This document shows, piece after piece, positions 7,291-10,200 of a stretch of 64,000 nucleotides of DNA. The stretch is from positions 6,236,822 to 6,300,821 of the forward strand of contig NW_003314261.1 in the NCBI RefSeq assembly GCF_000143415.4, read 5' to 3'. How positions within the stretch are numbered: the stretch's first letter is position 1; each line of letters starts with the position of its first letter. The DNA comes from Selaginella moellendorffii (lineage: Eukaryota > Plantae > Lycopodiophyta). The notes beneath the pieces were generated by a model. It was not told the origin of the DNA, did not search any database, and saw nothing but the letters and a program-made list of their open reading frames with translations. A program made the translations under genes and the position numbers.

Positions 7291-10200
7291 CTAAGAGATC
7301 CCACTACTATTCCCTTCACCACTGTCCTCGGCATCAACACCTTGTTCCAGACTTTCCGTACGTTTGCAGGCTGTGGGACTTGATCCTTCCAGTGAAGCGG
7401 TGTCCGTCCTGGGAGATTTCACTTCCTGGAAAACAATCTCTGTAGCTTCACCATGGCCAGCTTCCTTTCCCCCAGCATCACTCTTTGAACCCCCACCCTT
7501 CGATCTATCCTCGGTATCGACACCTTGTTCCAGACTTTCGGTGCGTGTTGGAGACTCATGATGACTAGTTTCAAAGCACCTACATAAGATAGGAGGTGAG
7601 AAACAACAATCAATGAGAATAGTGAATGCAGTTACCCTGCATTGCTTTCAGCGATCTCATCCTGAGGACCAGCCTCGCTCTCCGAGGTTTCAGTGGGAGT
7701 GATATGGACAATTGGAGTATCTGATACTTCAGGGTACCTAACAGACACACAAATAAGTTCCATAAACAATGAGAAACTATACGATGCTACCTTTCATCAG
7801 AACTAGAAGCCACTTCTGTTATGTGAGATGCTGTCACTACTTCCGTTTGATTGTTTTCAGCTTCTGAGGCTTCAGGTGAAACTTCTGTTTGAATATCAAC
7901 GGTAGCATGCTCCATGGTTTCAACTTCCTTTTCGACGGCAGTAACTTCTGTAGTCTGTTTTGTGCCTTCTGCATGTGGTGCTGGAGTATCTAATACTTCA
8001 GGAAGAGAAAGAAACCTAACAGACACACAAATAAGTCCCATAGAAAATGAGAAACTATATGACGCTACCTTTCAGAAGAACCAGAAGCCACTTCTGTTAT
8101 GTGAGGCGCTGTCACCACTTCACGAATGACCTCCGTTTGATTGTTTTCAGCTTCTGGTAAAACCACTGTTGTTTGAATATCAACGGTAGCATGTTCCATG
8201 GTTTCAACTTCCATTTCGGAGGCAGTAACTTCTGTAGTCTCTTCTGTGCCTTCTGCATGTGGTGCTGGAGTATCTGATACTTCAGGAGGAGAAAGAAACC
8301 TAACAGACACACAAATAAGCTCCATAGAAAATGAGAAACTATGTGACGCTACCTTTCAGAAAAACCAGAAGCCACTTCTGTCATGTGAACCACTTCATCC
8401 GTTTGATTGTTTTCAGGTTCTGGTAAAACCTCTGTTGTTTGAATATCAACGGTAGCATGCTCCATGGTTTCAGCTTCCTTTTCGACAGCAGTAACTTCTG
8501 TAGTCTGTTTTGTGCCTTCTGCATGTGGTGCTGGAGTATCTAATACTTCACGAGGAGAAAGAAACCTAACAGACACACAAATAAGTTCCATAAAAAAGGA
8601 GAAACTATATGACACTACCTTTCAGAAAAACCAGAAGCCACTTCTGTTATGTGAACCACTTCACGAATGACTTCCGTGTGATTGTGTTCAGCTTCTGGTA
8701 AAACCACTATTGTTTGAATATCAACGGTAGCATGCTCCATGGTTTCAACTTCCATTTCGAGGGCAGTAACTTTTGTAGTCTCTTCTGTGCCTTCTGCATG
8801 TGGTGCTGGAGTATCTGATACTTCAGGATGAGAAAGAAACCTAACAGACACACAAATAAGCTCCATAGAAAATGAGAAACTATGTGACGCTACCTTTCAG
8901 AAGAACCAGAAGCCACTTCTGTTATGTGAGGCGCTGTCACCACTTCACGAATGACCTCCGTTTGATTGTTTTCAACTTCTGGTAAAACCACTATTGTTTG
9001 AATATCAACGGTAGCATGCTCCATGGTTTCACCTTCCATTTCGGAGGCAGTAACTTCTGTAGTCTCTTCTGTGCCTTCTGCATGTGGTGCTGGAGTATCT
9101 GATACTTCAGGAGGAGAAAGAAACCTAACAGACGCACAAATAAGCTCCATAGAAAATGAGAAACTATGTGACGCTACCTTTCAGAAGAACCAGAAGCCAC
9201 TTCTGTTATGTGAACCACTTCACGAATGACCTCTATTTGATTGTATTCAGGTTCTGGTAAAACCTCTGTTGTTTGAATATCAACGGTAGCATGCTCCATG
9301 GTTTCAACTTCCATTTCGAAGGCAGTAACTTCTGTAGTCTCTTCTGCGCCTTCTGCATGTGGTGCTGGAGTATCTGATACTTCAGGATGAGAAAGAAACC
9401 TAACAGACACACAAATAAGTTCCATAAAAAAGGAGAAACTATATGACAAATAAGTTCCATAAAAAAGGAGAAACTATATGACGCTACCTTTCAGAACCAG
9501 AAGCCACTTCTATTACGTGAGACGCTGTCACCACTTCATGAATGACCTCCGTTTGATTGTTTTCAGCTTCCGAGGCTTCAGGTGAAACCTCTGTTGTTTG
9601 AATATCAATGGTAGTATGCTCCATGGTTTCAATTTCCTTTTTGACGGCAATGACTGCTGTAGTCTCTTCTGTGCCTTCTGCATGCGGTGCTGGAATATCT
9701 GATACTTCAGGAGGAGGAGAAAGAAACCTAACACACACAGATAAGTTCCATAGAAAATGAGAAACTATATGACGCTACCTTTCAGAAGAACCAGAAGCCA
9801 CTTCTGTTAAGCGAGGCGCTGTCACCACTTCAAGAATGACGTCCGTTTGATTGTTTTGAGCTTCCGAGGCTTCAGGTGAAACCTCTGTCGTTTGAATATC
9901 AACGGTTGCATGCTCCAAGGTTTGAACTTCCATTTCGACGGCAGTATCTTCTGCAGTCTTAACGACAGTGACAATTTCAGTCACTTGTTCATTTGTTCCT
10001 TCGACGGTGCTCGATTCCGTGGCTTGAATAGTTACTTCAGCAGTTCCGACGGTCAACATACCACTGTCAACCAAATCATCTGCACGTACCGTCATATCGA
10101 GTTTAGTAAACAAAAAATCGTGTCAATCTTCTCTCATACCTTCGTCCATTTCGTTGGTTTTCTCGATGGCTTTACCAACTTCATTCTCAGGCTCCGTCAA

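Follow-up and report, generated by a model that had tools for sequence, protein, structure and literature searches.

Tandem exon duplication, in which an exon and its adjacent intron are multiplied as head-to-tail copies with symmetric phases inside one gene, is in principle a familiar phenomenon (Kondrashov and Koonin 2001, by the account of it in PMC2674458). Most of the described cases have two copies, which serve as mutually exclusive or cassette exons in folded domains. Letunic, Copley and Bork are also said to have treated such duplications in 2002. Here we describe an array of the same general architecture on the minus strand of a 64,000-nucleotide stretch of the Selaginella moellendorffii genome (contig NW_003314261.1, positions 6,236,822 to 6,300,821; hereinafter the window, meaning this whole stretch), in the gene for the chromatin remodeler SYD. 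Unlike the better-described cases, it has seven copies and two further partial ones, all of them apparently included, which encode a disordered tail, and its founding exon was fused from two neighbors. We consider it likely that this is a real, translated exon-plus-intron array in the acidic tail of SYD, which arose by duplication, grew by unequal exchange, and has been selected for its reading frame rather than for its residues.

Several repetitive coding systems come close to this locus. The kringle-IV type 2 unit of human LPA is 5.5 kb long and spans two exons; its product is a folded kringle domain, and its effect on the phenotype is known. It resembles the SYD array in being an exon-plus-intron unit whose copy number varies between alleles by unequal exchange, with in-frame changes of length; however, the SYD unit measures 284 bp, and has neither a predicted fold nor a known effect. 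The PEVK exons of titin and the Olduvai exon doublets of NBPF belong to animal genes for which differential splicing and mechanical or neural functions are documented. These, too, consist of many short symmetric exons that code for low-complexity, charged, disordered sequence and that evolve fast and vary in number, whereas the SYD array lies in a plant chromatin remodeler and is known here from gene models. The nearest relative by position is the tail of Arabidopsis SYD, which is likewise long, plant-specific, and free of known domains, follows the ATPase, SnAC and AT-hook regions, and is described as dispensable for the core activity (Su et al. 2006, as reported in PMC13471032); yet profile and word searches detected no sequence similarity between it and the Selaginella unit.

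The gene in the window codes for the SYD-type SWI2/SNF2 ATPase of S. moellendorffii. We located its RefSeq model, XP_024518394.1 (3547 aa, from a 6.95-Mb scaffold), by a word search with the tail of a second SYD protein, XP_024543984.1, and mapped it exactly, exon by exon, onto the window. This placed the coding region at 7294..20660 on the minus strand in 52 exons, separated by 51 introns that are all of the GT-AG type and 43-88 nt long, with a median of 53; the introns of the array are thus ordinary in length and consensus for this gene. Pfam searches with XP_024518394.1 recovered the SNF2-rel_dom (residues 1119-1410, E 8e-92), Helicase_C (residues 1436-1549, E 7e-24) and SnAC (residues 1643-1725, E 2e-16) domains, and found no bromodomain and no match past residue 1725 of the 3547; an AT-hook motif, GRGRPRK, follows SnAC in exon 13402-14093. 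The absence of a C-terminal bromodomain is what separates SYD from BRM. A preliminary description of this stretch, made from its letters, had called the gene SYD, in agreement with the RefSeq name and the SNF2, Helicase_C and SnAC domains; the orthology to Arabidopsis SYD (At2g28290) is assigned from the RefSeq product name. The translations of the seven array exons are exact consecutive substrings of XP_024518394.1 (residues 2891-3418) with a single split-codon R between them, and EFJ38819.1, an older model from the Joint Genome Institute (JGI) on the same scaffold, splices all seven units identically and departs from the RefSeq model only at the very 3′ end. The exon structure of the array is already present in public annotation, and our literature search found no paper mentioning these accessions or the array; what it yielded on SYD and Selaginella was background. 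With respect to the 3′ end, the two JGI models of SYD make different choices, and the position of the SYD C-terminus is uncertain.

The array itself is a tandem exon duplication, made of head-to-tail exon-plus-intron copies with preserved GT-AG sites. Read on the minus strand, its eight introns begin with GTAG and end with GTTAG; six are 53 nt long, one 88 nt and one 51 nt, and the flanking exon sequence reads ...GAAAG before each intron and GTTTC after it (GTACC in the case of the last one). The seven unit exons between them (E1 to E7 in gene order; lengths in the list below) are all multiples of 3, and each is open in exactly one frame, the other two frames holding 1-6 stops per unit. All eight introns are in phase 2 (split codon AG|G), the units being symmetric (2-2). 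The first in-frame codon of every array intron is TAG; therefore, retention of an intron would truncate the protein. Tandem Repeats Finder reported a period of 284 nt in 6.2 copies (88% matches, score 2611) over 7736-9447, as well as a perfect 35-nt internal tandem duplication in the 88-nt intron. The units differ from each other by ~7% on average and include two variants, TKQTT..VEKE in E5 and E7 and TEETT..EMEV in E2, E3, E4 and E6; E3 and E6, which lie 825 bp apart, are ~98% identical, with 3 amino acid differences. An Rfam scan of 6800-13000 returned chance-level matches only, with no known RNA hosted by the 53-nt introns, and Pfam searches with single exons gave nothing useful; a sub-threshold match of DUF3826 to E0, the partial copy preceding E1, was taken as chance.

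Much of this had been anticipated in the preliminary description. Its eight intron coordinates and seven exon lengths are correct to the base when the splice sites are read on the minus strand, and its statements that all the exons are stop-free multiples of 3 in one phase, that the intron was duplicated with the exon, that every change of exon length (by indels of 3-12 nt, all multiples of 3) keeps the frame, and that the two unit variants are interleaved all stand. To these we add three features: the proto-copy E0 (9779-9959), the 5′ end of a unit opening the exon at 7636-7737, and an older array at 11992-12560. The features are as follows:

7294..20660, minus strand: SYD coding region, from the mapping of XP_024518394.1
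9779..9959, minus strand: E0, proto-unit made up of the final 181 nt of ordinary exon 9779-10079, from local alignment to E6 and protein alignment of the units
9728..9778, minus strand: intron of 51 nt in phase 2, with a 2-nt deletion relative to the 53-nt type, from splice sites and gene-model mapping
9488..9727, minus strand: unit exon E1, 240 nt, residues 2891-2969 of XP_024518394.1; counterpart H1
9400..9487, minus strand: intron of 88 nt with the perfect 35-nt internal tandem duplication
9178..9399, minus strand: unit exon E2, 222 nt; counterpart H2
9125..9177, minus strand: intron of 53 nt
8894..9124, minus strand: unit exon E3, 231 nt, near-copy of E6; no counterpart in the five-unit models
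8841..8893, minus strand: intron of 53 nt
8619..8840, minus strand: unit exon E4, 222 nt; counterpart H3
8566..8618, minus strand: intron of 53 nt
8353..8565, minus strand: unit exon E5, 213 nt, recombinant by informative sites and distances; no counterpart in the five-unit models
8300..8352, minus strand: intron of 53 nt
8069..8299, minus strand: unit exon E6, 231 nt; counterpart H4
8016..8068, minus strand: intron of 53 nt
7791..8015, minus strand: unit exon E7, 225 nt; counterpart H5
7738..7790, minus strand: intron of 53 nt
7636..7737, minus strand: exon after the array, starting with the 5′ end of a unit, from local alignment; an exact piece of XP_024518394.1 at residue 3419
7580-7635, minus strand: intron of 56 nt
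7294..7579, minus strand: last coding exon of the RefSeq model, with the stop codon at 7291-7293
11992..12560, minus strand: older array of three exon-plus-intron units in the same tail, from DNA alignment and the intron table

The two exons that flank the array account for most of the repeat exon. In local alignments, positions 60-231 of the repeat exon (E6 as query) match the last 181 nt of exon 9779-10079, that is E0, in 156 of 181 columns, and positions 14-34 are identical in 21 of 21 nucleotides to positions 5-25 of exon 7636-7737 (score 42, against a maximum of 26 in 300 shuffles); about 25 nt at the fusion junction have no clear source. These alignments show a unit that, on the sequence record, was evidently born from one ~284-bp tandem duplication with its breakpoints in two neighboring exons. 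The ancestral gene would have contained an exon A, a phase-2 intron of ~53 nt and an exon B; a tandem duplication of ~284 bp, with one breakpoint inside A and the other inside B, would have created an internal fusion exon made of the 5′ end of B and the 3′ three-quarters of A and flanked by two copies of the intron. Since the length of coding sequence duplicated is divisible by 3, such an exon would keep the frame and be symmetric (phase 2-2). As for the introns of SYD in general, their lengths fall in a very tight range, and therefore small tandem duplications can easily span a whole intron together with parts of both flanking exons.

The later history of the units can be followed through 44 informative columns. 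E5 is a mosaic, with a 5′ half like E7 and with a 3′ half and following intron like E2, and E4 is likewise mosaic. Judging from these sites, unequal exchange or gene conversion has evidently changed the number of units and mixed their variants, and the unequal crossing-over proposed in the preliminary description finds its clearest trace in E5 as a recombinant unit. We also sought a single crossover that would turn the five-unit order of a second SYD copy (below) into the seven-unit order of the window, and found no one event that fits; therefore, at least two events are needed, and the history is reticulate. The older array at 11992-12560 consists of three more diverged units (exon lengths of 180 and 138 nt were obtained) whose introns of 46, 46 and 50 nt are in phase 1 and clearly homologous to each other. 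With this second array in the tail, the mechanism of growth has therefore acted at least twice in the SYD gene.

Sequence searches with the unit led to another copy of the gene. Using a profile of eight unit peptides against 1.84 billion representative proteins, we obtained a single real match, XP_024543984.1 (E 1e-212, 7 stretches), a RefSeq protein from a different, 1.3-Mb scaffold; a second profile match, to a 3766-aa repeat-rich protein, covered only a 36-residue acidic stretch (E 1e-5) and was rejected as compositional. Among these representatives, and also in the word search with the tail, only S. moellendorffii proteins matched, which points to a lineage-specific expansion. XP_024543984.1 and the corresponding JGI model, EFJ15621.1, contain five full units each (H1 to H5), and we compared this copy as protein. 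Five units pair one-to-one (E1/H1, E2/H2, E4/H3, E6/H4 and E7/H5), with 3 amino acid differences in each pair; the two that are extra in the window copy are E3, which is closest to E6 (3 differences), and E5, which has no counterpart. The exon after the array shows a further 9-nt difference between the two copies. Since the S. moellendorffii assembly contains both haplotypes as separate accessions (PMC3442193, PMC3095285), the second scaffold, at 99.2% identity, is most likely the other haplotype rather than a recent paralogue. A difference in copy number, seven units against five, is supported at the protein level, the two copies being presumably allelic and correctly assembled; change of copy number had been proposed in the preliminary description. 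The two SYD copies also differ in the number of an 8-residue repeat, GHIVAQAQ, in the Q-rich N-terminal region (exon 17771-19218, ~18150-18250 on the minus strand), of which the window protein has one copy and the second-scaffold protein three; this, too, is a difference in length that keeps the frame.

A comparison of substitutions and indels among the units bears on what selection has acted upon. The summed ratio of the proportions of nonsynonymous and synonymous differences (pN/pS) is 1.23, the variable columns number 19, 20 and 17 by codon position, and the mean pairwise identity of the exons (92.8%) is that of the introns (92.6%) in all but name; when the unit exon was scanned in 36-column windows, none was significantly depleted of changes (P=0.69). 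The indels tell a different story: those in the exons measure 3, 3, 3, 9, 9, 9 and 12 nt, all seven being multiples of 3 (P ~5e-4 at a chance of one third each), whereas the two in the introns, of 35 and 2 nt, are not (Fisher P ~0.03 for the contrast). Because all seven exon indels are in frame while pN/pS is 1.23 and exons are about as similar as introns, the reading frame appears to be protected and the residues to be without detectable constraint. The proposal in the preliminary description that the tail is "length-tunable", taken as a selected function, finds no support in these data, with substitutions as frequent in exons as in introns and no part of the unit significantly conserved.

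The last coding exon provides what we regard as a natural control for the frame argument. It contains a direct repeat (7316-7423 and 7198-7305, 81% identity) whose period of 118 nt is not divisible by 3, which puts the second copy out of frame: the RefSeq open reading frame stops ~12 nt into it, at 7294, and no exon junction of the RefSeq model lies downstream of that stop. With a frameshift or stop in the array, by comparison, several exon junctions would follow downstream, and either nonsense-mediated decay would act on the mRNA of this essential remodeler or the remaining tail would be lost, such that only in-frame variants would survive.

Several considerations weigh against our reading of the array as translated, frame-selected and variable in number. 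The absence of stops is not significant by itself (66 inferred substitutions, 1.4 stops expected, P of none = 0.24) and was not used as evidence. The indel argument comprises seven events, some of which could be due to slippage in a 9-nt-periodic sequence, which would favor multiples of 3. Concerted evolution among the units can hide purifying selection, and they may still contain a functional motif. Further, the splicing of the array is deduced from two computational gene models together with the frame argument, we infer rather than observe the part of nonsense-mediated decay in maintaining the frame, and the seven-versus-five comparison is one of proteins, with the term haplotype drawn from the 99.2% identity and the literature.

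With regard to the encoded peptide, the array stands at the far end of a tail of ~1800 residues without any known domain, and its place in the acidic C-terminal tail, as first described, is plain from its composition: 22% Asp+Glu against 3.6% Lys+Arg, with a net charge of -99 over 528 residues and an isoelectric point of 4.2. Each unit contributes ~75 residues and a net charge of about -14, and from about residue 1900 onward the tail carries -11 to -22 net charges per 100 residues. Structure prediction with AlphaFold2 on one unit, using the eight copies as a shallow alignment, yielded a predicted template modelling score of 0.15, a mean predicted local distance difference test score of 65 and no secondary structure, and the peptide is probably disordered. 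For the Arabidopsis protein, the N-terminal region with the ATPase and the AT-hook is enough for activity, and nuclei contain a form that lacks the C-terminal part (Su et al. 2006, both points as they are cited in PMC13471032). Most likely, what the array adds is acidic disordered length in bulk and not a specific motif; it looks like the neutral growth of a dispensable acidic tail, the simpler reading being a tolerated, near-neutral expansion.

The foremost alternative to such tolerated expansion is that each unit carries a short linear motif, for instance an 11-residue core, that binds histones or a subunit of the complex, with the copy number setting the avidity, such that the difference between seven and five units would matter to function. 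In keeping with this, 21 of 76 columns are invariant across the eight copies, AlphaFold2 is most confident (75-80) about residues 31-50, which correspond to the core, the frame is kept in the units, and acidic disordered tails of remodelers can in general be regulatory. Yet a motif under selection sits poorly with the lack of any exon window significantly poorer in substitutions, with exons that diverge as fast as introns, and with the pN/pS of ~1.2. It is also at odds with the divergence of the two SYD proteins, which differ by 0.8% over their first ~2790 residues and by ~4% within the paired units, with the confinement of the unit to S. moellendorffii in the databases searched, and with the dispensability of the C-terminal half of the Arabidopsis protein (as related in PMC13471032). 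We regard such a valency-setting array as quite unlikely.

A second alternative, raised in the preliminary description as exon skipping, takes the units for regulated cassette exons, the skipping of which would generate a ladder of SYD isoforms with tails of different lengths. Any subset could be skipped in frame, all units being phase 2-2 and multiples of 3, the near-identical splice sites invite alternative pairing, and alternative splicing is known to arise from tandemly duplicated exons (Kondrashov and Koonin 2001, again by the account in PMC2674458). Against it, RefSeq lists a single protein for each SYD locus, with no isoform label, no short spliced fragments turned up when one unit was used in a word search of a database poor in plant transcripts, and the ordinary length and consensus of the introns suggest constitutive, intron-defined splicing. 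Regulated skipping is, in our estimation, very improbable.

Least probable, by a small margin, is an artefact of assembly in which the repeat was collapsed or inflated on one scaffold and the alleles do not in truth differ: the near-identity of E3 and E6 at a spacing of 825 bp, the assembly gaps elsewhere in the window (479 N) and the knowledge of the second-scaffold copy from protein models would allow it, but the units, at ~7% mean difference and each with private substitutions and indels, are easy to assemble, E5 is a unique recombinant and not a copy of any other unit, the five shared units are each 3 amino acids apart between the copies, as real alleles would be, and no gap lies within 14 kb of the array.

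Taken as a tolerated expansion, the locus offers a clean, datable example of the birth of a symmetric exon by a small duplication with its breakpoints in two neighboring exons, and of the multiplication of that exon, with two copy numbers within one sequenced plant. It also illustrates that preservation of the frame can be selected without selection on amino acids, and hence cautions that "in-frame and stop-free" is not proof of peptide function. In lycophytes as well, the domain-free tail of SYD would be plastic in evolution, which agrees with its being dispensable in Arabidopsis. No new mechanism is opened thereby, and the gene model was already public. More speculatively, and in our view rather unlikely, the short introns of Selaginella (~50 nt) may let small duplications create and amplify exon-plus-intron units at large, with nonsense-mediated decay passing only the in-frame arrays, such that the disordered tails of essential regulators like SYD grow by a ratchet without selection on the peptide; the difference in length between seven and five units (about -28 in net charge) could still alter the stability or autoinhibition of SYD measurably.

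Elsewhere in the window, we noted Ty3/gypsy-type retrotransposon open reading frames (gag, protease, reverse transcriptase and integrase) at 24343-29000 and 32500-35600 on the plus strand, downstream of the promoter side of SYD; they are broken by assembly gaps, seen as runs of N, near 24.6-25.0 kb and 26.5 kb. Two similar intronless open reading frames, at 303-869 on the minus strand and 39286-40638 on the plus strand, have in common an N-terminal stretch of ~140 residues, and the longer one continues into a kinase-like C-terminal part.

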